Made by a program: the position numbers and the translations under genes. Shown piece by piece: positions 1,160 through 49,724 of a stretch of DNA of 63,693 nucleotides (position 1 is its first letter; each line of letters opens with the position of its first letter). This stretch comes from Octopus bimaculoides. Lineage: Eukaryota. The notes beneath the pieces are model-generated. The model was not told the DNA's origin. It ran no database searches and saw nothing but the letters and a program-made list of their open reading frames with translations. The DNA lies in the NCBI RefSeq assembly GCF_001194135.2, contig NC_068994.1:38401634-38465326 (forward strand), read 5' to 3'.

Positions 1160-3505
1160 CTGTTGCGGTCTGTTTAAAGTCAGATCATTCCACTTATCAC
1201 ATGGCATGGTTCTGCAGTGAATATCTTCCCTGTCAAACTTTGATTGTTGAGATGGCTTCAGTTTCCTCGACATTGTGTAATGAACTCCAGGAGGAACACA
1301 GGTAGGATCAAATATATATTTTGATTGGATGTTTATTGCAGGTGTAACCTTGTGGTACATATCAACACTACTATCATAGTTGCTATCTGTCTGCTTCAGT
1401 CTATGAACTATACAGATTGATATAGAGATCACTATAACAACTGATACAATCACAGCTGCTATAACAATAACAATCATCACATTCAATTGGAGACCATTAC
1501 TTGATTCTGTTGTCGTCTTTGAAGGAGTCTTAAATATCTTTGATGTGTTGTNNNNNNNNNNNNNNNNNNNNNNNNNNNNNNNNNNNNNNNNNNNNNNNNN
1601 NNNNNNNNNNNNNNNNNNNNNNNNNNNNNNNNNNNNNNNNNNNNNNNNNNNNNNNNNNNNNNNNNNNNNNNNNNNNNNNNNNNNNNNNNNNNNNNNNNNN
1701 NNNNNNNNNNNNNNNNNNNNNNNNNNNNNNNNNNNNNNNNNNNNNNNNNNNNNNNNNNNNNNNNNNNNNNNNNNNNNNNNNNNNNNNNNNNNNNNNNNNN
1801 NNNNNNNNNNNNNNNNNNNNNNNNNNNNNNNNNNNNNNNNNNNNNNNNNNNNNNNNNNNNNNNNNNNNNNNNNNNNNNNNNNNNNNNNNNNNNNNNNNNN
1901 NNNNNNNNNNNNNNNNNCATACATGTTCTTTTCTTCTCTGTCTAGTGACTCAGTTGTAGAAATAAATCCCACATCAGATATCTGAAATGGTAGAATATAT
2001 TTACCATTAGATAACAAAGAATAGGTTAATTGTCCTCCATCTCCAATATCTGGGTCTGTAGCATTGACATATCCAACAGGGAAGTCTTTGTGTTCGTTTT
2101 CATAGGTGAGGAACTTAAATATGTCCTGACTAAACTGAGGTTGTACATCATTTATGTCAGTAACAAGCACAGAAAACTGTTTCTCTACTTTCAATGGAGG
2201 TAAACCATTATCTTGACATTTAATGGTGAAATTAAAGCTCTTTTCTCTTTCTCTATCTATTTCACTCTTTACAACAACTTTGTATTTCTTTTCAGACTCT
2301 GAGATTAGCTGAAGGTATCTATTTTGTAAATGGCACTTCACTTGTCCATTTACTCCACTGTCATTGTCAATAGCATTGACATAAGCAAAGAAGCTATGAA
2401 TTTGGGTTCCTTCTGAGAGAACAGCTGTTTTTCCAGTTGACTTAACGACAAATTTGAAGTCAATGTTTGGTGGATTATTATGATGAGTGACACCATTTAC
2501 CAGAACAATGGCAGTTGATGACATTGGTGGGTTGCCATTATCTCTGGCTTCAACAAACAATTTATATATCCTTCCGAACTGAAATTCTTTCTTCAGAAAC
2601 AAATATCCAAGTACTTCATCTAATCTGAAAAACTGTACAGCATATTTTGATGTGATGGCATTGAAAAAATAAGATATTAATCCATTTTCTCCTTCATCTA
2701 AATCTGTAGCTGACAGCTTTGCAATAGGTTTGTTTAACTGGTGTGTGTCATTTACAGTGACATTATAACTATTTTCAGAGAACAAAGGTTTATTGTCATT
2801 TATATCTTTAACTAATATTTTAATATGAAGTACACCTTTTTTCTCTGGTGATTCTTTATCTCTGGCAATTAGCTGAATTTCATAAATGCTTTTTGTCTCA
2901 CGATCTAAGACATGTTCAAGATTTAATTGCAATAAAACAGATCCATCGAATTGTTTAGAAACAAGCAATTTAAAAGGAGTATTTAAATTTTCGATCCCAT
3001 AAGTGATTCTGGAATTCTTAATACTGACATCATTATCAATGGCATTTGGAATTATAGACTTGGTTCCTATTGAATCATTTTCATCAAATTTTAAATGAAA
3101 TTCCTCTTTTGGAAACTTGGGATAATTATCATTGACATCTTCTATTATAAGTTTCAGTTTTAATATCTTAATAACAGAATAGCCATGTTGAACAGTTATT
3201 TCCAATATTCTGAAACATTCCACATTATATTGACACAGAATTTCTGCATCCAATATGGCAGCTGTGTACAAGTGTCCTCCCTGTGTAACATTAAATAACA
3301 GAACTGTTTCATCAGTACTTCCCTGAAGTACATTAAACATCAGTTTGCTGCTATCATCCAGAGATGGTACAGTATCCAATAAGTGTGTATCAGTGACAAT
3401 ATCTCCAATATAGCTGTGTATATCATTGTTCTCTTTCACATGGTAGGTATGATCCACACACCAACAACTCTCAGCCATTAACAACAAGAGAAGTATGTAT
3501 AACAT
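1160..3505 (-). CDS. Pcdh: Protocadherin gene 1, large exon (signal peptide, EC1-EC6, TM, proximal tail); N gap at 1552-1917
   Basis: ORF 1073..3505 has a signal peptide (MLYILLLLLMAESCWC), an EC1 C-X5-C motif (CQYNVEC), DxNDN/LDRE cadherin motifs and a TM (VMIVIVIAAVIVSVVIVISISICIV). CAG|GTAAAT donor at 1160, homologous to the other paralogs. Confidence 0.93.
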
Positions 3506-5401: not shown

Positions 5402-7051
5402 AACATTTGCTGTGTTCTCCAGTGATGGTGTTCCTTTATCTTTTACTAAAATCTTAAACTCGTACATGTTCTTTTCTTCTCTGTCTAGTGTCTCAGTTGT
5501 GGAAATAAATCCCACATTAGATATCTGAAATGGTAGAATATCTTTTCCATTAGTCAACAAAGAATAGGTTAATTGTCCTCCATCTCCAATATCTGGGTCT
5601 GTGGCATTGACATATCCAACAGGGAAGTCTTTGTTTTCATTTTCATAGGTGAGAAACTTAAATATGTCCTGACTAAACTGAGGTTGTACATCATTTATGT
5701 CAGTAACAAGCACAAAAAACTGTTTCTCTACTTTCAATGGAGGTAAACCATTATCTTGACATCTAATTGTGAAATTAAAGCTCTTCTCTATCTCTCTATC
5801 TATTTCACTCTTGACAACAACTTTGTATTTCTTTACAGACTCTGAGATTAGCTGAAGATATTTATTTTGTAAATGACACTTAACTTGTCCATTTACTCCA
5901 CTGTCATTGTCAATAACTTTGACATAAGCAACAAAGCTGTGAATTCGTGTTCCTTCTGAAATAACACCCGTTTTTCCAGTTGACTTTATGACAAATTTGA
6001 AGTCAATGTTTGGTGGATTATTCAAATGAGTGACACCATTTACCAGAACAATGGCAGTTGATGACATTGGTGGGTTACCATTATCTCTGGCTTCAACAAA
6101 CAATTTATATATCCTTCCAAATTGAAAGTCTTTCTTTAAGAACAAATATCCAGTTACTTTATCTAATCTGAAACACTTTATAGCATATGTTGATGTTTTA
6201 CTATTGAAGAAATAAGATATTAATCCATTTTCTCCTTCATCTAAATCTGTAGCTGACAGCTTTGCAATAGGTTTGTTTAACTGGTGTGTGTCATTTACAG
6301 TGACATTATAAATATTTTCAGAGAACAAAGGTTTATTGTCATTTATATCTCTAACTAATATCTTTATATGAAGCACACCTTTTTTCTGTGGTGATTCTTT
6401 ATCTCTGGCAATTAGCTGAATTTCATAAATGCTTTCTGTCTCACGATCTAAGACATTTTCTAGATTTAGTTGCAATAAATCAGATCCATCCAATTGTTTA
6501 GAAACAAACAATTTAAAAGGAGTATTTAAATTTTCGATCTCATAAGTGATTCTGGTATTCTTAATACTGACATCATTATCAATGGCATTTGGAATTATAT
6601 ATTTGGTTCCTATGAAAACGTTTTCATCATATTGAATATGAAATTTCTCATTTGGAAACATAGGAGAATTATCATTGACATCTTCAATTACAACTTTGAT
6701 TTCTAATATCTTAATAACAGAATAGCCATGTTGAACAGCTATTTCTAATATTCTGAAACATTCCACATTATATTGACACAGAATTTCTGCATCCAATATG
6801 GCAGCTGTGTGCAAGTGACCTCCAGGTGTAACATTAAATAACTGAACTGTTTTATCAGTGCTACCCTGGAGTACATTAAATGTCAGTCTGTTGCCATCAT
6901 CCGAAGATGGTACAGTATCCAATAAGTGTGTATCAGTAACAATATCTCCAATAAAGCTATGTATATCATTGTTCTCTTTCACATGGTAGGTATGATCCAC
7001 ACACCAACAACTCTCAGCCATTAATAACACCAACAAAAGTATGTATAACAT
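5402..7051 (-). CDS. Pcdh: Protocadherin gene 2, large exon (EC1 to near the end of EC5); 3' part lost in the 100-N gap at 5302-5401
   Basis: Open frame from ATG 7051 to the gap; closest paralog of gene 1 (same MLYILLL..AESCWCVDHTYHVKENNDIHS start). Confidence 0.88.
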
Positions 7052-15543: not shown

Positions 15544-17894
15544 CTGCTGAGGTCTTTTTAAAGTCAGCTCATTCCATCTATCAGCTGACATATTTCTGCA
15601 GTAAATACCTTCCCTGTCTACCAATGGTTGCTGAGATGGCTTCAGCTTCCTCTCCATTGTGTACTGAACTCCAGAAGGAACACAAGTAGGATCAAATATA
15701 TATTTTGATTGGTTGTTTAATGCAGGTGTAACCTTGTGGTACATATCAACACTGTTGTTATAGTTGCTATCTGTCTGCTTCAGTCTATGAACTATACAGA
15801 TTGATATAGAGATCACTATAACAACTGATACTATCACAGCTGCTATAACAATAACAATCATCACATTCAATTGGAGACCATTACTTGATTCCATTGTTGT
15901 CTTTGAAGGGGTCTTAAATATCTTTGATGTGTTGTTACTAACTGTTAGAGTCAAAGACAAAGTTGTTGTTGATGACAGAACTGGACTACCACTGTCTTTC
16001 ACACCTAGTTCCAGTTCATAGNNNNNNNNNNNNNNNNNNNNNNNNNNNNNNNNNNNNNNNNNNNNNNNNNNNNNNNNNNNNNNNNNNNNNNNNNNNNNNN
16101 NNNNNNNNNNNNNNNNNNNNNNNNNNNNNNNNNNNNNNNNNNNNNNNAGTGGGGATGGTAGTGGACATTAAGACTGAAAGGGTTAACATTAGGGAAACTG
16201 AAATAGGGAGCATTATCATTTAAATCCATAACCTCAACAACAACATTTGCTGTGTTCTCCAGTGATGGTGTTCCTTTATCTTTTACTAAAACCTTAAACT
16301 CATACATGTTCTTTTCTTCTCTGTCTAGTGACTCAGTTGTGGAAATAAATCCCACATCAGATATCTGAAATGGTAGAATATGTTTTCCATTAGATAACAA
16401 AGAATAGGTTAATTGTCCTCCATCTCCAATATCTGGATCTGTAGCATTGACATATCCAACAGGGAAGTCTTTGTTTTCATTTTCATAGGTTAGAAACTTA
16501 AATATGTCCTGACTAAACTGAGGTTGTACATCGTTTATGTCAGTAACCAGCATAGAAAACTGTTTCTCTACTGTCAATGGAGGTAAACCATTATCTTGAC
16601 ATTTAATGGTGAAATTAAAACTCTTTTCAGTCTCTCTATCTATTTCACTCTTGACAACAACTTTGTATTTCTTTTTAGACACTGAGATTAGCTGAAGGTA
16701 TCTGTTTTGTAAATGGCACTTCACTTGTCCATTTGCCCCACTGTCATTGTCAGTAACTTTCACATAAGCAACAAAACTGTAAATGTGAGTTCCTTCTGAG
16801 ATGACAGCTGTGTTTCCAGTTGACTCTAAGATAAATCTGACATCAATATTTGGTGGATTGTTAAGGTGACTGATACCAATAATGTGAACCATAGCTGTTG
16901 AGGACATTGATGGTTTACCATTATCTTTGGCCTCAACAAACAATTCATAGACTTTTCCTAAGTGAAAGTCCTCATTTAAAAATATTTCTCCAGTTACTTC
17001 ATCCAATTTAAAACACTGTTTCATCTTATTTAGTGTTTTAGAACTAAAAATATAAGACATTTTTCCATTTTCCCCTACATCTAAGTCTGTAGCAGACAGT
17101 CTTACAACAGGTTTATTCGGCTTGTGTGTATCATTTAAAGTAACGTAGTATGTATCTTGGGAGAACAAAGGAATGTTATCATTTTTATCTTTCACCAATA
17201 TCTTTACATCAAGTACACTTTCTTTACGTGGTGTTCCCCCATCTATGGTAATCAACAGAATAGTATAAATCTCTTTTGTCTCACGGTCTAAGTTACCTTC
17301 CAAAATTAGTTCTAATAAATCTGTTCCATCTGATTTTTTAGAAACAAGCAATTTGAAAGGAGTGTCTTCATCCTGTTTGACTTGATAAAAGAGTTTAGAA
17401 TTCTGGATACTAACATCATTATCAATGGCATTTGGTAGTATTTCTTTTGTTCCTTTCAAATCATTTTCATCAAACTGCAGGTGAAATTGCTTGCTTGGAA
17501 ATATAGGATAATTATCATTGACATCTTCTATCATAACTTTGATTTCTAATATCTTGATAAAAGAATGGTCATATTGAACTGCAATTTCCAGTATTCTGAA
17601 ACATTCTACATTATATTGACAAAGAGTTTCTGCATCCAATATGGCAGCTGTATATAGTTGTCCTCCAGATGTAACATTAAATAACTGAACAGTTCCATCA
17701 GTACCACCCTGGAGTATTTTAAATGTCGGTTTGTTGTTGTCACCCTGAGACTGTATATTATCTACTAAGTGTGTATCAGTAACAATATCTCCAATATAGC
17801 TGTGTATATCATTGTTCTCTTTCACATGGTAGATATGATCCACACACCAGCAACTATCAGCTATCAACAACATCAACAATATCACTGACAACAT
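15544..17894 (-). CDS. Pcdh: Protocadherin gene 3, large exon; N gap at 16022-16147
   Basis: Joins ORFs 16005..17924 and 15481..16002 across the gap. GCC-ATG at 17894 (MLSVILL), acceptor at 17925, CAG|GTGAGT donor at 15544. Confidence 0.9.
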
Positions 17895-20217: not shown

Positions 20218-20475
20218 GTACTTACCAACAGTTGTCAGTTGCTTATACAGTTGTTACTGTGCTGTTTCAGTGTTCTTGCAACAAAGTTATAATAGAGGTA
20301 GTTCTGAGCAGTTTGATATGTGATAGTGTTATGTAGTTCTATGAAGTTGGATGTGTAGTATGTAATGTGTGTTGTAGCCAATGACAAGCTGTCTTTTATT
20401 CTAATGCAAGGAAACGGAAGTACAGCATCCAGTTCTTGCAGTTAATGATGGGTTGACTCACAAATTAGTTTACTT
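20218..20475 (-). promoter_or_regulatory. Conserved promoter + non-coding exon 1, copy 3 (gene 3)
   Basis: Donor at 20226, CCAAT 20378-20382, ggaaacggaag, TGACTCA 20454-20460. Confidence 0.8.
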
Positions 20476-20545
20476 TCACCTCACACACTTACATATACTT
20501 GTGTGTTGGTAATTTGTACATAAATTGAAGGGATGAAAATAAATA

Positions 20546-23210: not shown

Positions 23211-25601
23211 CTGTGCATGAGGTCTTAAAACTGAGTGATCCCATCTATCACTTGCCGTGGTTCTATAGTGAAATTCTTCTGTATCTACTGATGGTTGTTG
23301 AGATTTCTTCAGATTTCTCTCCATTGCGTACTGAACTCCAGGAGGAACACAAGTAGGATCAAATATATATTTTGATTGTACGCTTAATGTAGGTGTCACT
23401 GTGTGGTACATATCAACACTACTATCATAGTTGCTATCTGTCTGCTTCAGTCTATGAACTATACAGATTGATATAGAGATTACTATAACAACTGACACAA
23501 TCACAGCTGCTATAACAATAGCAATCATCACACTAGACTGGAGACCATTACTTGATTCTGTTGTTGTCTTTGAAGGGGTCTTAAATATCTTTGATGTGTT
23601 GTTACTAACTGTTAGAGTCAAAGACAATGTTGTTGTCGATGACAGAACTGGACTGCCACTGTCTTTCACACCTAATTCCAGTTCATAGAATCCAGCATCG
23701 TTTTGGTAAGGTGAGCGAGAGAAAGATAAGGCACCAGAGTGATGGTTCATTTCAAATAAGTTTTTCTCATTTCCTCTGAGTATTTCATATGTGAGGAAGG
23801 CATTGTGTTGACTGTCTCTGTCAGAGGCCCTAACAACTGTGATATCATGGTCAGAGCGGGGATGGTAGTGGACATTAAGACTGAAAGGGTTAACATTAGG
23901 GAAACTGAAATAGGGAGCATTATCATTTAAATCTATAACCTCAACAACAACATTTGCTGTGTTCTCCAGTGATGGTGTTCCTTTATCTTTTACTAAAACC
24001 TTAAACTCATACATGTTCTTTTCTTCTCTGTCTAGTGACTCAGTTGTGGAAATAAATCCCACATCAGATATCTGAAATGGTAGAGTATCTTTTCCATTCG
24101 TCAACAGAGAATAGGTTAATTGTCCTCCATCTCCAGTATCTGGGTCTGTAGCATCAACATATCCCACAGGGAAGTCTTTGTGTTCATTTTCATAGGTGAG
24201 GAACTTATATATGTCTTGAATAAACTGAGGTTGTACATCATTTATGTCAGTAACCAGCATAGAAAACTGTTTCTCCACTGTCAATGGAGGTAAACTATTA
24301 TCTTGACATTTAATGGTGAAATTTAATCTCTTCTCACTCTCTCTATCTATTTCACTCTTGACAACAACTTTGTATTTCTTTCCAGACAATGAAATTAGCT
24401 TAAGGTATTTATTTTGTAAATGACACTTCACTTGTCCATTTACTCCACTGTCATTGTCAGTAACTTTCACATAAGCAACAAAGCTGTGAATTTGAGTTCC
24501 TTCTGAGATGACAGCTGTGTTTCCAGTTGACTCTAAGATAAATTTGACATCAATGTTTGGTGGATTGTTAAGGTGACTCATTCCATTAATAAGAACAGTG
24601 ACAACAGAGGTCATTGGTGGTTTACCTTTATCACTGGCTTCAATGAATACTTCATAAAATTTTCGAAACTGAAATTCTTTTTTCAAAAATAGCTCTCCTG
24701 ATGTTTGATTTAAAATAAAGAATTTCATATCTTTTTCTGAAGTAAGAGGACTAAAATTATATACAATCGCTCCATTATCACCTTTGTCTAAATCCATTGC
24801 TGATAAAATGACAATAGGTTTAGTTCTCTCTTGTGTCTCATTTACTGTCACCTTGTAGATATTCTGGGAAAATACAGGAGCATTGTCATTTTTATCTTCT
24901 ACTAATATCCTTAAATCCATTAGCCCTTTCTTAGAATGAGATCCCCCATCTGTAGCAATTATTTGAAGATTATAAGTTTCCTTTCTCTCTCTGTCTAATC
25001 GTTTCACTAAAAGCAATTCAATTTTACTTTTCCTATTAGAAACTTTTGAGACCGACAATTGAAAAGTATTTTCCTGGTTATTCCTCAGTTGATAAGAAAT
25101 ATTTGAGTTCTGAATAGTGACATCTTTATCAAAGGCATTTGGAATGATCTCTTTTATTCCTTTTGGGGTACTTTCATCAAAGAGGATATGAAATTCCTTA
25201 TCTGGAAATATGGGATAATTATCATTGACATCTTCTATCATAACTTTGATTTCTAATAACTTGATAAAAGAATGGCCATGCTGAACTGCTATTTCCAATA
25301 TCCTGAAACATTCCACATTATATTGACACAGAGTTTCTGCATCCAATATGACAGCTGTATATAGTTGTCCTCCAGATGTAACATTGAATAACTGAACATC
25401 TCTGTCAGTACTATGCTGCAGTATTTTAAATGAAAATTTGTTGCTATCATCCTGAGACTGTATATTATCCAGTAAGTTTGTATCACTGACAATATCTCCA
25501 ATATAGCTGTGTCTATCATTGTTCTCTTTCACATGGAAGATATGATCTACACACCAGCATCTGTTAGCCATCAGGAGCACCAACATTATCATTAACAACA
25601 T
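23211..25601 (-). CDS. Pcdh: Protocadherin gene 4, complete large exon
   Basis: Gap-free ORF 23202..25601 with 6 EC + TM; acceptor at 25632, CAG|GTAAGA donor at 23211. Confidence 0.95.
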
Positions 25602-27514: not shown

Positions 27515-27778
27515 ATACTTACCAATAGTTGTCTATTGTATATACTGTTGTTATTGTACAGTTTCAATGTTCTGGTAACAAAGTGTTGTAGTAGTAGCAG
27601 GAGTTCTGAGTAGTTTGGTATGTAATAGTGTTATATAGTTCTATGAAGTTGGTTGTGTAGTATGTAATGTGTGTTGTAGCCAATGACAAGTTGTCTATTA
27701 TTTCAATGCAAGGAAACGGAAATACAGCCTCCAGTTCTTGCAATTAATGATGGGCTGCCTCACAGACTAGTTTACTAA
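27515..27778 (-). promoter_or_regulatory. Conserved promoter + non-coding exon 1, copy 4 (gene 4)
   Basis: Donor at 27523, CCAAT 27680-27684; TGACTCA changed to TGCCTCA. Confidence 0.78.
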
Positions 27779-29063
27779 CACACACAAACTTATATGAATG
27801 TGTATGTATGTCCAAATATAAAATGTATGTACAAATGAAAATAGTGTCTAGAATATTCAAGGCAATATTGTATGCAATCTGTTACTTTAAAATATGTATG
27901 AGCTATTTTTTATTTACAAAAGAGAAAAATGCAACTTTATAACTTTAGTAAACTTTATAAAACATTTTGTAAGTTGCTTTTTTCTTGTTTATTTAGTTGT
28001 TTAAACTTTCCTATTAAACATGCAGCAGCATTTGACATTTCTCCTAAAAATTAATTAAATATTTAAAAAATTTCATTACTGCATTGTAGATGTAATTTCA
28101 AAATACAAAATTATGGCTTTGAATGAAGTTCTATACTAACTCTAATAGTTGTGGCTAAGAAATTCATATTTAGAGAGAGAAGTTAGCTTTAGAAAACAGA
28201 TACAGTTCTATTAAATTTGACCAGTCTTGTAAGGAATTAAAGCAGAGTTGTAAGGAATTATAACAAACAATGTAAATATTTAATTCTATTTAGCTCTAAA
28301 TGAAATAAACACCTTTCTTTTACCAATTCATATTTTTCTTCTAAGGCTGGAGACATTTTTAAGTAATAAAAATTTTAATTTCTAGAAAATAGTTTTTTAT
28401 TGGAACTGTTTATACTACTTACATTTTTTTCAAAACTACTTTTTCAGTTATGAGATTATGAACAATATATTTTTTTAATTTTATTGTGGAGGTGGAGTGG
28501 AGTAGGGGTAGGGTTATATGCTTATATTTTAACCATATTGTGAAATAAATTCTTGAAAGATACATTTAACTTGCAAAGATTCGAGGTTTTATTAATTAAA
28601 TTAAATTAATATATTTCTAATTTTAATTGTTTCTATCTGAGATTCAATAGCTGAATAATTATAGTTCCAGTGAGACAATCTGGAAAATGAGTTTTTAAAA
28701 AAGTTACTGCAGTGAGAATATCCTTTAAATGTATATTTAAAATATATACAATAATATTATAAATGGGATGACTGAACAAAGTATAAAATTGATAACAAGC
28801 TTTACTTGTTATTTGGTTATAATGAGACATTATTTCAATCATATTTACACCAGGCAGTAGCAACTATTTCCTTGTGAATTTCATGATTCATGTATATAAG
28901 TATATAACTAACTTAACTGTAGTTAAACCTAGATAAATTCATAATGCTTTTGTTAAAATCTTATTGTAGACTATATTTTGTGCCTTTTACTTGTCTCAAT
29001 CATTGGTCAGTAACCATGCTGGAGTGCCACTTTGAAATTTAAGTATGCACTAAAATTATGACA

Positions 29064-29862: not shown

Positions 29863-30185
29863 TTAGTTGTTTAGTGTAGATAGAATAGGTACCTGAGGTA
29901 CTGAAGGTACCTTTGGTAGTGTTGTTACTTTAGGTACAGCTGGCAGAGGTGGTTTACAGTCTGAAGTAAACTGACTTGTCATTGGTGCTATAGATGGTTG
30001 TTCAGTTATGTTAGATGTGGTACTAGATATAGTCAAAGGCACATGGTCAGGATAACAGGAAGTGTTTGAGTCAATATAAGATTGATATTTATAGCCATTG
30101 TTGTTATCTCCCCTTGATCTATCAAGTGTGTGTGGAAGTCGATTCCTCCTACTCCATGTGAGATCACTTTGGTAACGGCATAGAT
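29863..30185 (-). CDS. Protocadherin gene 5, terminal exon B
   Basis: tttccAG acceptor; (D)LCRYQSDLTWSRRNRLPHTLDRSRGD...KPPLPAVPKVTTLPKVPSVPQVPILSTLNN-TAA, open. Confidence 0.82.
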
Positions 30186-30732
30186 CTGGAAATATATTGG
30201 TTTATAAACCATTTAAAATGCATTCTATACAATATGAACTGGAATTTCATTTCTAAGTTATGTCCATATCGAACCTTTGTTTACACATATCCATATATTG
30301 TTGAAACGGTGTATAAGTAGATATAAGTAATCATAAGATTGTTTACGTAAATTGACTGATTTTTCAGGAATGGAAACTTCAGTTTATAAAGGATCATTTT
30401 AAAAGATTTTTAAAGAGAAACCAAGCTGCACTATTCTTATATAACCACTTTTTTTATTTTCATTTTTAACTTCCTTATTGTGTGAAAGTTTTCAGACTAT
30501 GTTGGCAATCCTAAAGAAAATTTTCAAGTATAGAAGCATAAATCTGTCAGAAAACTTATAAGAAATTGCATTGTAATGCATGAAAAAGGAAAATATTCTC
30601 GATATATATAAACAACAAACAAACAAAATAAAACAAGATGCTGTTTAAAAAATATATAGCCGTGACAATGGAATCTTTTTGTTGGCTAATGTTGTTAAGG
30701 CCATTCTAAGATTCTTCTGAATAGACTAAATA

Positions 30733-32011
30733 TTAGGTCGTCAAGTATGAAATTTGTAGTAAGTTAATGGTAAACTTTGACAGCTGCACATTTTGCGCCA
30801 TTATTATATTTTGACAATCATTATTTTTTCTTAGAAAGTTGGAACATCTATTTCTTTATTCCAACTAATTTTGCACTTTATAAGGTATTTATAAATCGAT
30901 TTTTTGCTATTTTTGTTTAGATATGGATAAGTCGGAAATTCGTACAGTTTTGAAATATGGATTCTTTCTTGGAAATGCAGCATCACAGACAGCTCGGAAT
31001 ATTAATGGAGTATTTCATTCTAATGTTATTACACAGCAGACAGTATCAAATTGGTTTGCAAAATTTCATTCTGGTAACTTTGACCTCACAAATGAGCAAT
31101 GTGGTCAACCAGAAACAAAGGTGGATAGCGACAAACTGAAAGCCATCGTCGAGATAGATCCATCTCAAAGTGCCCGTAATTTATCATTGTTATTTGGTGT
31201 TAGCAAGCAAACAATATTGACTCACCTAGTTCAAATCAGTAAGGTGAAAAAGCTGGATAAGTGGGTTCCACATGAACTCAATGAAAATCAAAAGCAGCAA
31301 CGTTTGGAAGCCTGCATTATGCTATTTTCTCATCACAATAATGAATCATTTTTTAATCGAATTGTAACATGTGATGAGAAATGGATCGAATGCAACAACC
31401 ATAAATGTTCAGCACAATAGTTGGACAAAGACAAACCACCAAAATACAGGCCAAAATGCAAAATTCATCAAAAGAAGCTGATGGTGTGTGTTTGGTGGTC
31501 TGGCACAGATGTGATCTATTATGATTTCATTAAACCGGGCTCGTCAATCATAGCCGAAGTATACTGCAGCCAAATGGACCAAATAATGCAGAAACTTACA
31601 AAAAAACAGCCTAGATTACTCAACAGATCCACTCCTATTTTATTGTAAAAAAAACGCCAGACCACACATCATAAAAGTGACTTTGGTGAAACTACAGAGT
31701 TGGAAGTTTTCCATCATCCACCATATTCACCTTATCTTGCCCCCACTAACTACCGCTTCTTCCAGAATTTGTATAACTTTCTTATAGAAAAAAAATTTTA
31801 TTCTGACAATGCTGTAAAACAAGCCTTCCAAGATTTTATTGACTCTAGATTATCAGGTTTTTACAGTTTCAGGCTGGACAAGATACCACTGAAATGGCAA
31901 AAGTGTCTTGATAATATGGGTGCATACTTTAATGAATAAAATTATTCCTTGTAGTTATAAAACATTAGCAAACTTTTTTCTTTTCTACAAATTTCATACT
32001 TGACGACCTGA
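30733..32011 (+). mobile_element. Full-length, inactivated mariner (IS630/Tc1/mariner) transposon
   Basis: 27-bp TIRs with 1 mismatch (ttaggtcgtcaagtatgaaatttgtag / ctacaaatttcatacttgacgacctga) and TA on both sides. Transposase 30923-31939 with WVPHEL, TCDEKW and HPPYSPYLAP, interrupted by stops at ~31418 and ~31646. Confidence 0.93.
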
Positions 32012-33266
32012 TATAATCTTCAAACACAAGACATAACACAGAAAGTAATTTGCTTGGAGAAAGTACAATTCAGGAAAAAATACACTGAACAAAACAAAAA
32101 AGTTCCTCTTTTACATGGATACAGGTTTCACAAAAACATACAGCAATTTTAGACTGAATATGGAAACTGTTTGTAATATTTGACATCTCCTGAAAGGTTC
32201 ACTATGATATAGAGATTCCATGAGTCCATTACATCTTAGAACTTAATTCAAAAGGCAACCTCTAATTTGTTCTATAGAACAAGTATTGTAAAAAAGATAG
32301 CTTTCTAGTACTCACATCATTTCTCTTCCTCTTGATGGCAGTTTTCAAAAACAAAATCTCAGTTGTACAGAGATGGTCATATCTACATTCAGACACATCT
32401 AAATACTAACATCGAAACCTTCTTTACTCAAAGCTACAATCAAAATACCTCATATTCTTCTTCTTTTGACTTGCCTAGAGCATGACAATGGACATACTAC
32501 ATATCTCTTTAATTATAGAATTTGTAGTATTCTTCATAATTGTGTCTTTTGAAGCTGATAATAGTTGGGATTGCTGCTCTTTACAGAAATACTACAGCCA
32601 TTGGTGTTCTTCCCTCATCATCAACCATTAAAGCACATGTTGCTTGATGAAACCAAGTAAATATCAGTATTAATTAATTACATCCCAGGACTTGAGTGTA
32701 ACTAAGTTCTATCAACTCCAGAAGAATGAAAGGCTAAATTCTGAGTACAGATCTCATCAAGGTCAACTTGAGATTTGAACTCAGAATTTAATGGTCTATT
32801 TGGCATATTGTCTAACTGTCAAACAATTCTGCCAATGCACTGCTACTAGTGAAATCCCTATTTTACAAACCTAGAGTATTAATTTCTGCTAATCATAGAG
32901 ATGTCAATGCACATGATAGAGAATGTTTTCAAAAACTGATAAATGACTTATAGTTAAAAAAGAGCCACTAAAACAGATTCTACTTCAGACTAAACAAGAA
33001 TTTTTTAAGCTTCCAAGACTTCACTAGAGTGAATGAAGTTCACATGTCTTGGCAACACACAACTGATGTTAATGCTCAACAGACTTTGGAAATAAGGAGA
33101 AAAATGTCAAAAGTAAGAATAATATTGGGAAAATTTACTCAACGTATTTCCATGTTCTATATTGACTATGAACGTCTAAGCTATACATGCATGCATGTTT
33201 AGATACACACATACTTACATATGCCATGTTGTAGTGTTGCACAAATATCTAGTGTTCCTAACTTAC

Positions 33267-33417
33267 CAGGCAGTTCCTCATAATGTCCAGTACTACCGAC
33301 ATTCCAGCCTTGACTGCTATCTGTGTGAGATGACAATGTTAACATCTCACTGAATTGGTCAGTACTGTTTAATTCTCTGTATCCTGGAGACATACTTTCT
33401 TCTCTTGGAGTGAATAT
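33267..33417 (-). CDS. Protocadherin gene 5, cytoplasmic exon A (151 bp)
   Basis: AG/GT flanked; IFTPREESMSPGYRELNSTDQFSEMLTLSSHTDSSQGWNVGSTGHYEELP. Confidence 0.85.
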
Positions 33418-33725: not shown

Positions 33726-36119
33726 CTGTTCACATGGTTCAGTGAAAGCTGAATTACCCCATCTATCACATAACGCAGTTCTGCAGTGAATATCTTCCAT
33801 GTCCACCGTTGGTTGTTGAGATTTGGTCATGTTTCTCTCTACTGTGTACTGAACTCCAGGAAGAACACAAGTAGGGTCAAATGTATATTTTGATTGGATG
33901 TTTAATGTAGGTGTAACCTTGTGGTACATATCAACACTATTATCATGGTTGCTATCTGTCTGCTTCAGTCTATGAACTATACAGATTGATATAGAGATCA
34001 CTATAACAACTGATACTATCACAGCTGCTATAACAATAACAATCATCACATTCAATTGGAGACCATTACTTGATTCTGTTGTTGTCTTTGAAGGGGTCTT
34101 AAACAACTTTGATGTGTTGTTACTAACTGTTAAAGTCAAAGAGAAAGTTGTTGTTGATGACAGAACTGGACTGCCACTGTCTTTCACACCTAATTCCAGT
34201 TCATAGAATCCAGCATCATTTTGGTAAAGTGAGCGAGAGAAAGATAAGACACCAGAGTGATGGTTCATTTGAAATAAGTGTTTCTCATTTCCTCTGAGTA
34301 TTTCATATGTGAGGAAGGCATTGTGTTGACTGTCTCTGTCAGAGGCCCTAACAACTGTGATATCATGGTCAGAGCGGGGATGGTAGTGGACATTAAGACT
34401 GAAAGGGTCAACATTAGGGAAACTGAAATAGGGAGAATTATCATTTAAATCCATAACCTCAACAACAACATTTGCTGTGTTCTCCAGTGATGGTGTTCCT
34501 TTATCTTTTACTAAAACCTTAAACTCATACATGTTCTTTTCTTCTCTGTCTAGTGACTCAGTTGTGGAAATAAATCCCACATCAGATATCTGAAATGGTA
34601 GAACATCTTTTCCATTAGATAATAGAGAATAAGTTAATTGTCCTCCATCTCCAATATCTGGGTCTGTAGCATTGACATATCCAACAGGGAAGTCTTTGTG
34701 TTCATTTTCATAGGTGAGAAACTTAAATGTGTCCTGACTAAACTGAGGTTGTACATCATTTATGTCGGTAACCAACATTGAAAACTGTTTCCGTACTTTC
34801 AATGGAGATAAACCATTATCTTGACATTTAATCGTGAAATTAAATCTCTTCTCACTCTCTCTATCTATTTCACTCTTGACAACAACTTTGTATTTCTTTT
34901 CAGATATTGAGATAAGCTGAAGGTATCTATTTTGCAAATGGCACTTCACATGTCCATTTACTCCACTGTCATTGTCAATAACTTTGACATAAGCAACAAA
35001 GCTGTGAATTTGAGTTGCTTCTGAGATGACAGCTGTGTTTCCAGTTGTCTTTAAAACAAATTTAACATCAATGTTTGGTGGATTGTTAAGATGACTGACA
35101 CCATTTACAAGAACAGTAGCTCTTGAAATTCTGTGAGGAATGCCATTATCTTTGGCTTCAATAAATAATTTATATAATTTTCCAAACTTATATTCTTTTG
35201 TCATAAATAATTCTCCAGTTACTTTATCTAATCTGAACAGTGTTTTCATTGTTTCTGGTGTTTTAGAACTAATTATGTATGAAATTCTCCCATTTTCTCC
35301 CTCATCCATGTCTGTAGCAGAAAAAATGAATATAGGTTTGTTTATTTGGTGCTTATCGTTTACTGTTATATTGTAGATACTCTGAGAGAATACAGGTGAG
35401 TTATCATTTTTATCTTTCACTAAGATATTTATATCCATTACACCTTCCTTTGGTGGTGTTCCCCCATCTGTAGCAACTAGTTGGATGTGATAATTAGATT
35501 TTGTTTCTCGGTCTAGCTTGTTTTCCAAAACTAACTCGAGTAAATCAGTTTCACTTAAATCATGTGATAAGACCAATTTAAAAGGAATATCTTCATCCTC
35601 TTTGAATTTATAATTGATCATTGTGTTCTGAATACTGACATCTTTATCAATGGCATTTGGAAGTATTTCTTTTGTTCCTATCAATGCATTTTCCTCATAT
35701 TGCAAGTGAAATTCCTTATTTGGAAATATGGGAGAATTATCATTGGCATCTTCTATCATAACTTTGACTTCCAATATTTTCAGAAATGAATGGCCATGCT
35801 GAACTGCTATTTCCAATATCCTGAAGCATTCCACGTTATATTGACACAGGGTTTCTGCATCCAGCATGGCAGCTGTGTATATTTGTCCTCCAGGTGTAAC
35901 ATTAAATAACTGAACATCTCCATCAGTATTACCATGGAGTACATTAAATGTCAGTTTGTTGTTGTTATCCCGAGACTGTATATTATCCAGTAAATGTATA
36001 TCAGTGACAATATCTCCAATGTAACTGTTTAAATCATTGTTCTCTTTCACATTATAAATATGATCCACACACCAGCAGCTCTCAGCCATCAACAGCACCA
36101 ACAATACCATTGACAACAT
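33726..36119 (-). CDS. Pcdh: Protocadherin gene 5, complete large exon
   Basis: Gap-free ORF; acceptor at 36153, homologous ATG at 36119 (MLSMVLLVLLMAESCWC), CAG|GTAAGA donor at 33726. Confidence 0.95.
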
Positions 36120-38178: not shown

Positions 38179-39254
38179 TTCTGTGATCCTATAGAGTTGC
38201 TTGCAACAGAACACAGCAATGAGTTCTACAAGTTTTAATCATTACACATATCATGAAAACAGTCTTGTATTATAATCAACCAATACATAATCTACACCCA
38301 TTTGAAACTGAACCAATGAAGGATTTTTTTATGTGGCTGTTCAAACTGCTAGAAACAAGGGACAAATCATCCTCAAATCACGTCCTACCCTTTTTGGAAA
38401 TGGATTCATTGAGTAATGTAGTACTGACTTTTCACAGCATAGGAATCAGGCAAAATGACCATAGCTGGAAGGTTTGTTTGATGAGCAGTGACCTGGGTCT
38501 AAACAACGGCAACAAGACTAACATCTGAATTTCTTCCACAAATGAGTGAGTCCCAATTAGTCAATTTATCTGTTATTAATAGTTGACAAATTTTCTACAA
38601 ATATCAACCGGCCATTAAAAAAAGGAACACATTATGCAAAGTAGTCTTTGATATTACTAAAAAGATAGACGGCTGTGGCTGCAATGACTTTGATCATTGG
38701 GATCTTTTCAGACAGGTTGATCAAGGGTTAAACTACAAGTTCTATAATTGCAACAGGTAAATAACCTCACAACTACCGATGAGAAATCAGAATAGCCTCC
38801 CTTGATTATTAAAAATCTACTTTTTCTACCCTGACTTCAATTCCTGTATAGATGGAGTATTTTGAAGATAATATTCTACTGAATTTATACATAAAGGGGG
38901 GAAAAAAATTAATCAAGATATTCTATTGTATACCATTTCCTTTCAGTGCAATATTATCCAATTATTAACCGGTTTGTTGACTCATGTAACAATATATATA
39001 AAAAAGAATGATAATAAAAATATTGATGGTTTAAAGATGTTAAATATTTGAAAAAATAAAAAAACCTATTTAAAAAATTTCTTGCAGTGCTGGTATTTAT
39101 ATATACTATAGTATGTGACAATTTAATTGTCTATTAAAGTGAGAGAATAGTATTCAAGTCAATACATTGTATGTTATTCAGAAAGTTATTTTATCAACAT
39201 AAATAACAGAGATTACCAAATGACTAAAATATAGATAACAAAAACTTTCAATAA

Positions 39255-39518
39255 ATACTTACCAACAGTTGTCATTTATTTTTAAAGTTGTTACTGTACT
39301 TTTAAAAAGTTCTGGCATCGAAAAGTTGTAGTAGTAGCAGAAGTTTTGAGCAATTTGGTATGTAATAGTGCTATGTAGTTCTATCAAGTTGGTTGTGTAG
39401 TATGTAATGTGTGTTGTAGCCAATGACAAGCTGTCTATTATTCCAATGCAAGGAAACGGAAGTACAGCCTCCAGTTCTTGCAGTTAATAGTGGGCTGACT
39501 CACAGACTAGTTTACTTA
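39255..39518 (-). promoter_or_regulatory. Conserved promoter + non-coding exon 1, copy 5 (gene 5)
   Basis: Donor at 39263, CCAAT 39420-39424, ggaaacggaag, TGACTCA 39496-39502, gtttact. Confidence 0.8.
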
Positions 39519-41439
39519 AGCCCACACACTTACATATACATATGTATGTGTTACAGAATAAATAAGGTAGAATATTTAATGTCTAGAATACTGAGGGAAA
39601 GCAATAAACTTATGAAAATATGATTAGATATTTAGCTTTCCAAGATTTAAAAAAATATCCTTATATAATAAATTTGGTAAAAGTTAGAAAAGTTTCCAAC
39701 ATCAAAAGTTTAAAATTTTCAATAACCTTTGCATACCCACCATTATTTAGTAAAAATTTTGGCAAAATTTATTAAAAATACCTTTAATTGCTTTTCATTA
39801 TATTTAGCTCTTATCACTAATTTCAAAATACGAAATTATGGCTTTAAATTAGAGACTCACCAGTAATCAACATATGAAATGACTTTCTACACATAAAAGA
39901 ATTTAGATTTAGAAGCTTAAGATACTAATTTCCAAAACAATAAGACTATACATATTTGTATTATGTATATGTTGTCTGCTACTATATATATCTGTGTGTG
40001 TGTGTGTGTGTGTGTGTTATGTATCACACAAGCTAACTGGTCTAATAAAGAATATTTTCTGATTATTGGAGGGTTTTTATTTTTTTAACAATTATCAAAT
40101 GATCAACAACTGATTTAATTTTTGTTACATTTCGATAATTACTTTTTCCTTACACTACATTATAGACAATAAATTTTGCTTTGATTTATTATAAAACTAC
40201 TTACTAAATACGAAATAATAGCTTTAAATACGAGATTTGACTAAAATTAATTTGTGAAATATGATACTATGTTTTCAACTGAGTGTTGTAAAATGCTAAT
40301 TCAAAAACAATATAACTATACATAAATAGCAAAGCTATATATTTCTTTTGCATGTTGTCTAGAATATGAATATATGTAATTGAAATATTTTACCCTGAAA
40401 TCTAACAAAACTCAAGTTACTTTCCTAGGCCATTCAAGCAGGTAAACTGAATTTGAACAGAAAAATCAAAATAATCTATATAACCTACAAAATGTTTTAT
40501 CTGAACTTGAATGACAATATCAAAATACTTCTCAGATATTATGGTTGATTTAGAAATTGAAGTCAGTTAATGATGTCTAAAGCCATGCATGACATAACTT
40601 TATATAACTTATGTACACAGAATCTGTATTATGACACTAAAAAATATTTGATACTCTATTAAATAGAAAATTAAATTGTATATTTTAATTCTCTATTTCC
40701 TTCACATTCTAAAGATTAGGAAGAATTTCATTTATAACCAAGTAAGAAGAATTCTTTATGCTTCAATGCTTTAATGAAAACTAATCTAATATAAATCCTT
40801 AAATATTACTATCAAGATAATGTCTATAATCACATTTCTACAAATATACTCATACAAATTTTCTTCTTCAGGCTATTTGATGGGCTAGCATACTTTCTGA
40901 CTGAAAATCTCTGTGAATCTTTAATGACTAATTAAAAAATAGTCAGTGTATTCATTAAAGTCCATTTCTTATATTTTTGTGTGAATTTCTGATGTTATAG
41001 TGACTGCATTTCAGTCATTGCAGCCCCTGGCCTTCTTCAGGAGCCTAGCATATTCAATGTCATCTCCAGAATTTCAGGAATACATCAAATATGAAATATT
41101 CATGGAGTGGACAACAAAATGAAAAGAATCTAAGCCTATACTCCTTACTGAATATGACAGACATGTGAAGAATACTGGATGATACATTGTAACTATAACA
41201 ACCAAAAGAACACGAGATGAAATATATCAGTGTATTTCAAGTGTATGGGAAGGAGATTAACTACATTAACAATATAAGTGAATTATGTAGTTGTATGTAA
41301 TATACATTGATCACTAGCATGTCAATCCAAATAAAAAGAATCCTTGTATTATAAAATATGTTTAGAGGAATATTCTATTGATATTTGTATTATTTTCATT
41401 ATGTAAGTTGTGAAGACAACTTACAAGATGCTTATATTA

Positions 41440-43999: not shown

Positions 44000-46390
44000 C
44001 TGTTGATGTTTTACTGAAGCTGGTTCAACCTGTCTATCATATGGCATAGTCCAGCAGTGAATATTTTCTCTGTCTACCATTGGTTGTTGATATTTCTTCA
44101 CATTTCTTTCCAATGTGTATGAAATGCCAGGTGGAACACAAGCAGGATAAAACATATATCTTGATTGCATATTTAATGTGGGTATAACACCATGGTTCAT
44201 ATCAATACTATTATCATAGTTGCTATCGGTATGATTTAGTCTATGAAGTACGCAGAATGTTATAGAGATCACTATAACAACAGATACGATCACAGCTGCT
44301 ATAACAATAATAATCATCACATTCAATTGGAGACCATTACTTGATTCTGTTGTTGTCTTTGAAGGGGTCTTAAATATCTTTGATGTGTTGTTACTAACTG
44401 TTAGAGTCAAAGACAACATTGTTGTTGATGACAGAACTGGATTACCACTATCTTTCACACCTAGTTCCAGTTCATAGAATCCAGCATCATTTTGGTAAGG
44501 TGAGCGAGAGAAAGATAAGACACCAGAGTGATGGTTCATTTGAAATAAGTGTTTCTCATTACCTCTGAGTATTTCATATGTGAGGAAGGCATTGTGTTGA
44601 CTGTCTCTGTCAGAGGCCCTAACAACTGTGATATCATGATCAGTGTTGGGATGGTAGTGGACATTAAGACTGAAAGGGTCAACATTAGGGAAACTGAAAT
44701 AGGGAGCATTATCATTTAAATCCATAACCTCAACAACAACATTTGCTGTGTTCTCCAGTGATGGTGTTCCTTTATCTTTTACTAAAACCTTAAACTCATA
44801 CACTTTCTTTTCTTCTCTGTCTAGTGACTCAGTTGTGGAAATAAATCCCACATCAGATATCTGAAATGGTAGAGTTTCCTTTCCATTTGTCAATAGAGAA
44901 TAGGTTAATTGTCCTCCATCTCCAATATCTGGGTCTGTAGCATTGACATATCCAACAGGGAAGTCTTTGTGTTCATTTTCATAGGTGAGAAACTTAAATA
45001 TGTCCTGACTAAACTGAGGTTGTACGTCATTTATATCAGTAACCAGCATAGAAAACTCTTTCTCTAGTGTCAATGGAGGTGAGCCATTATCTTGACATTT
45101 AATGGTGAAATTAAAACTCTTTTCCCTCTCTCTATCTATTTCACTCTTGACAACAACTTTGTATTTCTTTACAGACTCTGAGATTAGCTGCAGGTATTTA
45201 TTTTGTAAATGACACTTCACTTGTCCATTTGCTCCACTGTCATTGTCAGTAACTTTGACAGAAGCAACAAAACTTTGAATTTGAGTTGCTTCTGAGATGA
45301 CAGTTGTGTTTCCAGTTGACTTTAAGACAAATATGACATCAATGTTTGGTGGATTGTTAATGTGACTGATTCCATTTATAAAAACTGTGACTGTTGATGA
45401 CATTGAAGGAGTACCATTATCTCTGGCATCAATAAATATCTCATAAATTTCACCAAAATTAAATTCTTTCTTCAAAAATAGCTCTCCTGTTGCCTCCTCT
45501 AATTTAAAGCTTTCTTTTATCCTTTCATGTGTTTTAGCAATATTAAAGACATAAGAAATTCTTCCATTTTCCCCTTTATCTAAGTCTGAAGCAGACACCC
45601 TAACAAGAGGCTTGTTTCTCTGGTATGTATCATTTACAGTGACATTATAATTATCCTGGGAGAAAACAGGGAGATTATCATTTTTATCTTTCACTAATAT
45701 TTTTATATCCAATACACCTTTGTTTGGTGGAGATCCTTCATCTGTGGCAATTAACTGAATATTGTACATGTCTTTTGTCTCACGATCTAAGGAACCTACT
45801 AAAATTAGATGCAATAAATCAGTTTCACCTGACTTAGAAACATTCAATTGAAAAGGAACATTTTCATTTTCCTTCAGTTGATAATTGAGTTTAGAATTCC
45901 GACAACTTATATCTTTATCAGTTGCATATGGAATTCTTTCTTTGATTCCTTTTGTCACACTTTCATCATATGACACTTGAAATTCCTTCTCTTGGAAAGT
46001 AGGATAATTATCATTGATATCATCTATTATAATTTTGAGTTCTAATATTTTGGTAAAAGAATGACCATGGTGAGCTGTTATTTCCAATATCCTGAAGCAT
46101 TCCACATTATATTGACAAAGAATTTCTGCATCCAATATGGCAGCTGTGTACAGTTTTCCTCCAGGTGTAACATTAAATAACTGAACACTTTCATCAGTGC
46201 TACCCTGGAGTATATTAAATGTCAGTTTGTTGCTATCATCCTGAGTCTGTTTATCATCCAGTAACTGTATATCAGTGACAATATCTCCAATATAGCTGTG
46301 TGTGTCATTGTTCTCTTTCACATGGTAGATATGATCCACACACCAGCAGCTGTCAGCCATTAACAACACCAACAGTATTACTGATAACAT
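44000..46390 (-). CDS. Pcdh: Protocadherin gene 6, complete large exon
   Basis: Gap-free ORF; acceptor at 46415, ATG at 46390 (another in-frame ATG at 46396), CAG|GTGAGA donor at 44000. Confidence 0.95.
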
Positions 46391-49341: not shown

Positions 49342-49342
49342 N

Positions 49343-49401
<59 letters not shown>
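49342..49401 (+). repeat. (GA)n(GT)n microsatellite next to an N gap
   Basis: Seen directly. Similar (GT)n(GA)n at 51693-51776 and (AT)n at 53149-53170, 54312-54342, 54663-54700 and 57853-57891. Confidence 0.9.
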
Positions 49402-49404
<3 letters not shown>

Positions 49405-49724
49405 AAGAGAGAGGTGGACACACAGAATAACTGTCAGAAAGATAGGTAGACAGGCAACTTTCTCTTTTACTATTATTCTCTATCCACTCTCTTCCTTCAC
49501 TCTGTCTCCCTAAATCTCTCTTTCCCCCTCCCTCCTCTTGTGTCCTTGCCTCTAACTGTTTAACCTGCCCCTCCTCTAACATCACACTTCCTATTACAGT
49601 TCAAGATGATGTTGAAGTAGTAAAAAAAAAAGTGCTCATAGTACATAGCTATTACATTATGTCACATGATGAAAATTTTATATATTCAGTACATACATGC
49701 ACACATTATGTATATGTGTGTGTG

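Follow-up and report, generated by a model that had tools for sequence, protein, structure and literature searches.

Probable domain-limited gene conversion, with cadherin repeats EC2-EC3 left out, in a tandem protocadherin array of Octopus bimaculoides

Cephalopods and vertebrates have both evolved large brains. In the clustered protocadherins of vertebrates, the number of synonymous substitutions per synonymous site (dS) is highest in the extracellular cadherin (EC) repeats EC2/EC3 and lowest in EC5/EC6, EC2-EC3 being spared by gene conversion (PMC4978886, PMC7811963), and region-restricted conversion in the alpha, beta and gamma variable exons is credited to Noonan et al. 2004 (cited in PMC4978886). 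The trans dimer of these proteins has an antiparallel EC1-EC4 interface, with specificity set by EC2-EC3 (PMC7811963). Here we analyse a stretch of 63,693 nucleotides (nt) from Octopus bimaculoides (NC_068994.1, positions 38,401,634 to 38,465,326), referred to as the window, which holds a tandem, same-strand protocadherin array of seven genes, G1-G7, with all large open reading frames (ORFs) on the minus strand. An earlier, sequence-only reading of the window had cited the vertebrate findings on EC2-EC3 specificity and conversion, and both match the published accounts (PMC4978886, PMC7811963).

The cephalopod protocadherin expansion is independent of the vertebrate one, as that reading had supposed and as is stated in PMC9068888 and PMC4978886, and cephalopod protocadherins (PCDHs) exist as complete genes instead of variable exons that are joined to shared constant ones (PMC9068888). 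At the level of whole genes, Albertin et al. 2022 (PMC9068888) suggested that gene conversion has homogenised the PCDHs of cephalopods, and Styfhals et al. 2019 (PMC6339937), citing Albertin et al. 2015, invoked conversion for cephalopod PCDH arrays. These proposals concern the same family and organisms, and in them conversion, as one possibility beside recent duplication, explains similar clustered paralogues and lineage-specific clades, whereas the present analysis is resolved to domains. In the cephalopod papers examined we found no domain-resolved dS, breakpoint analysis or test of orthology against species grouping; the domain pattern might already be described in Albertin 2015 or Wang & Ragsdale 2017. 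The phenomenon as such is well known from vertebrates, and the octopod case represents a convergent instance with unusually clean domain-bounded limits.

The octopus locus shares with the vertebrate clusters the tandem same-strand arrangement, a large exon encoding six EC repeats and a transmembrane (TM) segment, the maximum of dS in EC2/EC3 and its minimum in EC5/EC6, the grouping of the converted part by species and the phylogenetic signal retained in EC2-EC3. The identity profile of the mouse alpha protocadherins (EC1 96, EC2 69, EC3 59, EC4 85 and EC5 98%; PMC4978886) resembles the octopod profile, especially that of Argonauta. Unlike the vertebrate units, those of the octopus are complete genes with their own 3' exons that arose by an independent expansion. 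In addition, the octopus genes carry a variable cytoplasmic tail within the same large exon which escapes conversion, another point in which the vertebrate clusters differ.

The silent-site mosaic of the large exon

Concerted evolution via interlocus gene conversion, with EC2-EC3 left out, is in our judgement the highly probable origin of the pattern described below, which is made up of a silent-site mosaic, a common breakpoint, a switch of tree topology, derived substitutions present in nine Octopus vulgaris copies, and recurrence in three octopod lineages. The zones of the large exon are given for G5, with dS ranges among G3-G6 (window positions):

33726..36119, minus strand: large exon of G5, with ATG at 36119 and donor CAG|GTAAGA at 33726
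35736..36068, minus strand: EC1, partly homogenised, dS 0.23-0.41
35090..35735, minus strand: EC2-EC3, an old cassette without homogenisation, paralogue dS 0.6-1.3, orthologue dS 0.13-0.15
35090..35114, minus strand: common 5' breakpoint at the EC3/EC4 junction, bounding the homogenised block (maximum chi-square, six G3-G6 pairs)
33925..35089, minus strand: homogenised block of EC4, EC5, EC6, linker, TM and ~15-20 juxtamembrane codons, dS 0.03-0.27
34352..34604, minus strand: core of the block, from the end of EC5 to the start of EC6, with a sliding-window proportion of synonymous differences (pS) of 0 among G3-G6
33726..33924, minus strand: cytoplasmic tail of the large exon, not homogenised, dS 0.27-0.55

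A codon alignment of the six large exons of G1-G6 was constructed, and dS as well as nonsynonymous divergence (dN) were obtained by Nei-Gojobori counting. Taken segment by segment, dS among G3-G6 was 0.23-0.41 in EC1, 0.62-1.34 in EC2, 0.87-1.31 in EC3, 0.14-0.27 in EC4, 0.06-0.15 in EC5, 0.04-0.12 in EC6, 0.03-0.20 in the linker and TM segment and 0.27-0.55 in the cytoplasmic part. The dN/dS ratio was mostly ~0.2-0.6 in all regions, with noisier values in the short, little-diverged EC6 and linker plus TM; since it is alike across regions, the contrast sits at silent sites and not only in protein constraint. Between codon columns 330 and 340 the sliding-window pS dropped from 0.35-0.70 to 0.09-0.21, and no synonymous difference at all was found among G3-G6 over codon columns ~510-590, which correspond to the core.

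The maximum chi-square break of all six G3-G6 pairs was located at alignment codons 336-344, just 5' of the NNPPNID motif, with 27-35% nucleotide difference on the 5' side versus ~6% on the 3' side and a third-position difference of 38-49% versus 8-10%; the observed maximum was reached in none of 200 permutations. In the nucleotide alignment the divergence collapses over ~10 codons at the EC3/EC4 junction. The longest identical runs extended over 89-167 nt compared to 35-38 nt expected, a length that none of 1000 permutations reached. As a control, the pair G1-G2 was used, G2 being a recent duplicate of G1. Here dS was uniform from EC1 through EC5 (0.15-0.22), which demonstrates that the silent sites of EC4-EC5 are not intrinsically slow. 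In EC5, G2 is nearer to G3, G5 and G6 (dS 0.09-0.10) than to its sister G1 (dS 0.165).

The 3' limit of the homogenised block likewise lies within the exon, ~15-20 codons past the TM helix (G5 ~33925-33960), beyond which the tail is diverged again. Between paralogues the introns showed no detectable similarity, and the paralogous match ends 12-17 nt outside the large exon. With both block limits inside the exon and similarity ending so close to it, the block is not a segmental duplication but consists of conversion tracts. At least four zones can be distinguished: EC1 is intermediate, EC2-EC3 is old, EC4-TM is homogenised in a graded manner around a core at the EC5/EC6 junction, and no homogenisation is seen in the cytoplasmic tail. 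Within this gradient EC4 itself is an intermediate zone of older or partial homogenisation and not fully homogenised.

Most of what the sequence-only reading had reported on this exon was borne out. The stretch 33726-36119, which it had called a large exon, is exactly one exon. The peptides it had quoted are present, namely IGTKEILP in G5, KGIKEIIP in G4 and KGIKERIP in G6 as well as LEGNLDRE in G3, VKRLDRE in G4, ENKLDRE in G5 and VGSLDRE in G6, and the stretches it had set side by side (23690-24050, 34200-34560 and 44470-44830) are homologous and 96% identical, though ~8-9 nt out of register. The sharp boundary it had placed within the exon was recovered as the single break common to all six pairs, and the divergence it had noted in the flanking introns agrees with the end of paralogous similarity just outside the exon. 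It had named uniform dS along the exon as the observation that would speak against it; regional dS, the sliding window and the maximum chi-square statistic all found dS clearly non-uniform. Its near-identity from EC4 through the TM segment applies to EC5-TM (dS 0.03-0.20) but not to the intermediate EC4, and the block ends only after the TM helix.

Histories of the segments in three octopods

For comparison we used the syntenic array of O. vulgaris (OX597827.1, 6.93-7.12 Mb, loci L001-L005), from which nine full large exons were taken. Orthologous non-coding DNA of the two species is 87-92% identical (divergence 8-13%), and around G6-G5 both gene order and non-coding DNA are collinear. In EC2-EC3 the orthologue dS was 0.14 for G5/P0002, 0.17 for G6/P0005 and 0.16 for G1 and the gene at 7.006 Mb (V7006), and overall 0.12-0.22, an ordinary level, compared to the 0.6-1.3 of paralogues, which is 4-9 times the divergence of O. 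bimaculoides and O. vulgaris. In EC2-3 no difference was fixed between the species, and 129 polymorphisms were of the trans-species shared type. These shared polymorphisms predate the split, and the unalignable paralogous introns beside well-conserved orthologous non-coding DNA likewise demonstrate that the genes are old. The duplications are old, as seen from EC2-EC3 dS and from introns that have lost all detectable similarity.

The same data bear on the proposal that all genes are young and that dS of EC2-EC3 is inflated by a locally raised mutation rate or by diversifying selection. In its favour dN is highest in EC2-3, and dN/dS of the pair G1-G2 is 0.41-0.52 in EC2-3 versus 0.17-0.21 in EC4-5. 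The ordinary orthologue dS of EC2-3, the polymorphisms from before the split and the paralogous introns all argue against it, and we regard it as extremely unlikely.

To follow the history of each segment, informative sites were counted in the quartet of G5, G6 and their two O. vulgaris orthologues:

Signal peptide to EC3: orthology 155, concerted 5, other 1
EC4: orthology 5, concerted 2, other 2
EC5-TM: orthology 0, concerted 8, other 0
Cytoplasmic tail: orthology 18, concerted 2, other 1

Within EC2-EC3, 133 sites were of the orthology type versus one of the concerted type. Consistent with these counts, nucleotide bootstrap support for the orthologue pairs was 100% in EC2-3 and 0% in EC5-TM, where the split by species received 97%. 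In the tail orthology was back for G6/V7029 (100%) and G1/V7006 (98%), with 0% for G5/P0002. EC5-TM showed no shared polymorphism, and fixed differences numbered four between O. bimaculoides and O. vulgaris and 54 between Octopus and Argonauta. With Argonauta as outgroup, all four differences between the two Octopus species are derived in O. vulgaris and present in nine out of nine sampled copies. Independent mutation fails to explain this finding, which points to spread by conversion after speciation. Among the nine O. vulgaris paralogues dS in EC5-TM was 0.01-0.05, far under the species divergence. Conversion after speciation is thus proven for O. vulgaris, whereas the case for O. bimaculoides is weaker: here conversion clearly acted until about the split and has since been evident mainly in the core (G5 ~34352-34604).

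The analysis was extended to Argonauta hians with six paralogues (L006 and L007), for which dS was 0.01-0.08 in EC1, 0.5-2.6 in EC2-EC3, 0.01-0.11 in EC4, 0-0.03 in EC5-TM and 0.05-0.31 in the tail. Three-segment least-squares fits of nucleotide difference, run per species set, gave the following breaks and differences (5' segment / middle segment / 3' segment):

O. bimaculoides, G3-G6: breaks at columns 142 and 350 (G5 35708 and 35096); 13.8% / 31.4% / 6.0%
O. vulgaris, nine genes: breaks at columns 134 and 365; 13.8% / 28.4% / 3.3%
Argonauta, six genes: breaks at columns 132 and 353; 2.0% / 33.1% / 1.1%

In each of the three species both breaks fall at corresponding positions, which are the EC1/EC2 and EC3/EC4 linkers, and since they match these linkers the spared unit is EC2-EC3. 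EC1 is intermediate in Octopus and fully homogenised in Argonauta, where paralogues are 98-99% identical on either side of the cassette and 33% diverged within it. The Argonauta paralogues therefore represent natural near-isogenic sets which differ almost only in EC2-EC3.

A similar profile was observed at the protein level in a second octopod protocadherin subfamily, sampled as P0076, P0091, P0093, P0095, P0102 and P0104 of O. vulgaris/sinensis and P0087, P0096, P0099, P0108, P0109, P0115, P0118 and P0119 of Argonauta: EC2-3 is 54-62% identical versus 93-100% for EC4-6. As identity in EC4-6 is ~94-98% even between Octopus and Argonauta, protein constraint may matter more in that subfamily.

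Purifying selection on the protein alone, with EC4-TM more constrained and no exchange between genes, was considered as a cause of the mosaic. The dN values of 0.01-0.09 in EC4-TM versus 0.21-0.35 in EC2-3 would fit, as would the EC4-6 identity of the second subfamily, which at 93-100% is high even between Octopus and Argonauta proteins. However, silent sites drop likewise, 5-15-fold, at similar dN/dS everywhere, the topology flips from orthology to species, and derived substitutions are common to all nine sampled O. vulgaris paralogues. Selection on the protein as sole cause is almost certainly wrong.

A further account would have unequal crossing-over, or a recent duplication of the 3' half, place a young EC4-TM part behind an old EC1-EC3, in which case repeated conversion in short tracts would not have occurred. 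Tandem same-strand copies are good substrates for such events, and copy content varies by species: in the sample of nine O. vulgaris genes, G3 and G4 lack a close orthologue as judged by EC2-3. Moreover, O. vulgaris P0002 joins G5-type EC2-3 to a G3-type TM/cytoplasmic end (94.5% over 505 nt). A crossover would nevertheless homogenise everything 3' of the break, yet divergence is seen in the tail, the intron and the small exons; in G6 and G1 the tail follows orthology, both block limits lie within the exon, the two species are collinear around G6-G5, and Argonauta is homogenised on both sides of EC2-3. The graded dS, with EC4 above EC5-6, and the mosaic nature of the block argue for many exchange events. 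Chimaeras are very unlikely to be the explanation.

The end of P0002 (L001 11914-12417) is 94.5% identical to G3 (window 15517-16021) and not to G5, and this tail represents either a separate exchange event or a chimaera. A deletion in O. vulgaris by unequal crossover between the G5 and G3 orthologues was considered on account of this G3-type TM/cytoplasmic end and of the next gene being the G1/G2 orthologue, but found no support, the non-coding DNA downstream of G3 being unlike that downstream of P0002; a conversion tract or a more complex history is no less likely. Between P0005 and P0002 O. vulgaris also carries an isolated fragment of the TM/cytoplasmic part followed by small exons (L002 17091-17579 = L001 3360-3848). 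It is homologous to this part of a large exon only, with 80-91% identity to the window genes, and NCBI merges fragment and small exons into the P0005 model of 1091 amino acids. A rearrangement has probably left it behind as a truncated pseudogene.

Several observations weigh against domain-limited conversion or restrict its extent. Of the derived substitutions none is fixed in G3-G6 as a whole and only two reach 75% of the copies, dS of EC5-TM among G3-G6 (0.07-0.14) is near the species divergence, and in O. bimaculoides, the identical core excepted, conversion may have slowed to a large extent after the split. The EC5-TM dS of G3-G6 between species (0.06-0.13) is somewhat under the EC2-3 orthologue dS of 0.14-0.17; it falls within the 8-13% non-coding divergence, at the low end of the neutral range, and some nucleotide-level constraint in the core is possible. 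EC2-3 is strongly but not absolutely excluded: the O. vulgaris gene at 6.939 Mb (L003 18363-20765) has an otherwise diverged EC2-3 in which the end of EC3 (columns 318-350) almost matches the G5/P0002 type, and this conversion tract, reaching ~30 codons into EC3, demonstrates that the boundary is leaky. The GC content at third codon positions is ~0.29-0.37 in the block versus ~0.23-0.25 in EC2-3, a small difference confounded by amino-acid content and a weak sign of GC-biased conversion. Finally, dS was obtained by counting and not from a likelihood codon model, with EC2-3 values near saturation, and gaps of N in the assembly leave G1 without EC5-EC6, G3 without most of EC6 and G2 without anything past the start of EC6.

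The slightly low between-species dS of EC5-TM and the core without substitution in four O. bimaculoides copies would both be accommodated if silent sites of EC4-TM were constrained, by double-stranded RNA for adenosine-to-inosine editing, by splicing or by other exonic signals, and no conversion had occurred. Cephalopod protocadherin transcripts are heavily edited. Constraint cannot, however, create species-specific substitutions common to all paralogues (4 and 54 sites), and in EC4-EC5 dS of G1-G2 and of G1 and its orthologue is at the neutral level (0.16-0.23). In terms of local structure the identical core folds no better than shuffled sequence (z = +1.35; EC2 control z = -0.86). Constraint on silent sites may contribute but is not the main cause, and as an explanation in place of conversion it is very improbable indeed.

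Under domain-limited conversion, the region that starts at the EC3/EC4 linker and runs ~15-20 codons beyond the TM segment is repeatedly overwritten between paralogues, most intensely near the EC5/EC6 junction, and EC1 is converted to a lesser degree, whereas EC2-EC3 keeps sequences specific to each paralogue, which have their orthologues in the other species and evolve under purifying selection. In trees of separate segments, which the sequence-only reading had proposed as a check, EC2-EC3 groups by orthology and EC5-TM by species. The two-zone evolution seen in that reading holds as a domain-bounded mosaic in three octopods, but the number of zones is at least four, EC1 being partly homogenised and the tail not. 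A tree of whole cephalopod protocadherin genes blends two histories, so orthology should be read from EC2-EC3.

EC2-EC3 as a putative recognition cassette

Paralogue-specific residues conserved across species were found at 62 of 215 positions in EC2-EC3, 5 of 111 in EC4 and 0 of 76 in EC5. Together with an orthologue dN/dS of 0.2-0.6, these residues demonstrate that EC2-3 is functional and not decaying. Positive selection on EC2-3 was not detected in region-wide dN/dS, which never exceeded 1 (0.2-0.6 for orthologues, 0.41-0.52 for G1-G2).

G5 aligns over EC1-EC6 with the ectodomains of gamma-B4 (6e6b, E = 3e-80) and Pcdh10 (6vg4, E = 2e-72), a likeness by sequence homology. Delta protocadherins, like the clustered ones, form an antiparallel EC1-EC4 trans dimer. 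For cis contacts, an EC5-EC6 interface is known from clustered protocadherins of vertebrates only (PMC10084454). By analogy with clustered and delta protocadherins of vertebrates, homophilic trans specificity would reside in EC2-EC3, and a uniform EC5-EC6/TM scaffold would keep the isoforms equivalent for cis association and membrane-proximal functions. The simplest reading would be a variable recognition cassette on a uniform scaffold, and the identity code which the sequence-only reading had seen in EC2-EC3 is, as an argument by analogy, consistent with the data. The octopod arrays evolve under the same domain regime as the vertebrate clusters, with EC2-EC3 diverse and orthologous and the rest uniform through conversion, a footprint to be expected if specificity resides in EC2-EC3 and the scaffold has to remain interchangeable. 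The segment for swaps is G5 35090-35735 and its homologues.

As to mechanism, the exchange would be homology-directed repair between misaligned tandem copies with short tracts. Selection against losing distinct EC2-EC3 sequences might keep the boundary at the domain linkers, and a divergence of more than 30% would then block heteroduplex extension and so reinforce the boundary mechanically.

A further feature of the array is a conserved non-coding element upstream of the genes:

39240..39621, minus strand: conserved element 5' of G5, with a GTAAGT donor at its end
27477-27811, minus strand: element copy
20179-20504, minus strand: element copy
11466-11853, minus strand: element copy
4660-5061, minus strand: element copy
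55375-55613, minus strand: element copy

The element comprises ~270 nt, one copy being present between each pair of genes and preceding each gene, and its copies are 79-85% identical within non-coding DNA that is otherwise devoid of paralogous similarity. Its core is an invariant 45-nt sequence, CTTGTCATTGGCTACAACACACATTACATACTACACA, containing ATTGG, and an invariant TTG|GTAAGTA donor is found at its end. In O. vulgaris the element is kept at ~84%. In vertebrate clustered loci a promoter of its own, with a conserved sequence element (the CSE/CTCF site), stands before each unit. A polypyrimidine-AG acceptor lies 18-35 nt 5' of each ATG, and element and acceptor together probably represent a promoter plus non-coding 5' exon for each gene, as judged from these motifs. 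A swappable EC2-EC3 cassette whose linker limits are held by selection, combined with a promoter/5'-exon element per gene, would amount to the full logic of clustered protocadherins reached by convergence; we put this forward tentatively and hold it to be rather doubtful. If true, the convergent logic would comprise variable trans specificity, an isoform-neutral cis and membrane-proximal part and individually selectable promoters.

Gene units and assembly of the array

Besides G5, the window contains the following large and small exons:

1160..3505, minus strand: G1 large exon, with N gap 1552-1917 over EC5-EC6
5402..7051, minus strand: G2 large exon, interrupted past the start of EC6 by N gap 5302-5401
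15544..17894, minus strand: G3 large exon, with N gap 16022-16147 in EC6 and the EC3/EC4 break at ~16871
23211..25601, minus strand: G4 large exon, with the EC3/EC4 break at ~24578 and the core at ~23834-24086
44000..46390, minus strand: G6 large exon, with the EC3/EC4 break at ~45367; orthologue of O. vulgaris P0005
63299..63693, minus strand: G7, 3' end of a large exon running off the window (tblastn)
59607-59756 and 58962-59237, minus strand: small exons of G7 (tblastn)
33241..33417, minus strand: exon 3 of 4 of G5, its first small coding exon (tblastn of P0001, P0009 and P0015)
29866..30192, minus strand: last coding exon of G5 (tblastn of P0001, 99% over 109 amino acids)

In G1 and G3-G6 the ectodomain and TM helix are encoded in one uninterrupted reading frame of ~2.4 kb from the ATG to the donor, and a CAG|GTRAG donor is found at every readable 3' end of these exons; G2 is cut by its N gap before the donor, and no continuation of its large exon was found beyond this gap. 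The orthologue of G1 is the O. vulgaris gene at 7.006 Mb. By tblastn, G3, G4, G5, G6 and G7 each have two downstream coding exons of their own before the next gene, and shared constant exons as in the vertebrate clustered loci were not found for G3-G7. The gene unit consists of a probable non-coding 5' exon, a large exon for ectodomain and TM and two small cytoplasmic exons.

The product of the G5 large exon comprises a signal peptide, six cadherin repeats, a TM helix and a juxtamembrane part, the hydrophobic TM stretch being visible in the large-exon translations. Pfam assigns Cadherin_2 to the first repeat, Cadherin to five repeats, and a CELSR2-9th-like domain to the sixth repeat, the Cadherin_2 score being about at the cut-off (22.6-23.7 bits versus 23 in G4, G5 and G6). 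The G5 product is 100% identical to the NCBI record 'protocadherin beta-3-like [Octopus bimaculoides]' (P0001), and its best matches among solved structures are protocadherins. By these sequence matches the window genes are protocadherins of the cadherin superfamily.

The window contains seven N gaps, of which three (1552-1917, 5302-5401 and 16022-16147) lie in or just 3' of the EC5-EC6 core, and around those of G1, G2 and G3 the array is probably incompletely assembled. Because these three gaps fall in or beside the homogenised region, an artefact of collapsed repeats or gap filling in a draft assembly was considered as the origin of the homogenisation. However, a record placed on an O. bimaculoides scaffold of 60.6 Mb matches the G5 protein at 100% identity, the pattern recurs in the large-scaffold assemblies of O. 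vulgaris and Argonauta hians, and such gaps are as expected of true near-identical repeats in a short-read assembly, so that we give an artefact practically no credence. Short-read assemblies tend to break or collapse in EC5-EC6, as the gaps show.

Two minor observations concern the DNA between and within the genes. The last intron of G5 contains an ORF of 165 amino acids (30923-31420, plus strand) whose translation resembles, on reading, the N-terminal part of a mariner/Mos1-type transposase and which would represent a transposon remnant. At 48800-49600, (GA)n/(TC)n and (GT)n/(CA)n dinucleotide repeats surround a 464-nt N gap (48879-49342) and give rise to spurious long ORFs on both strands.

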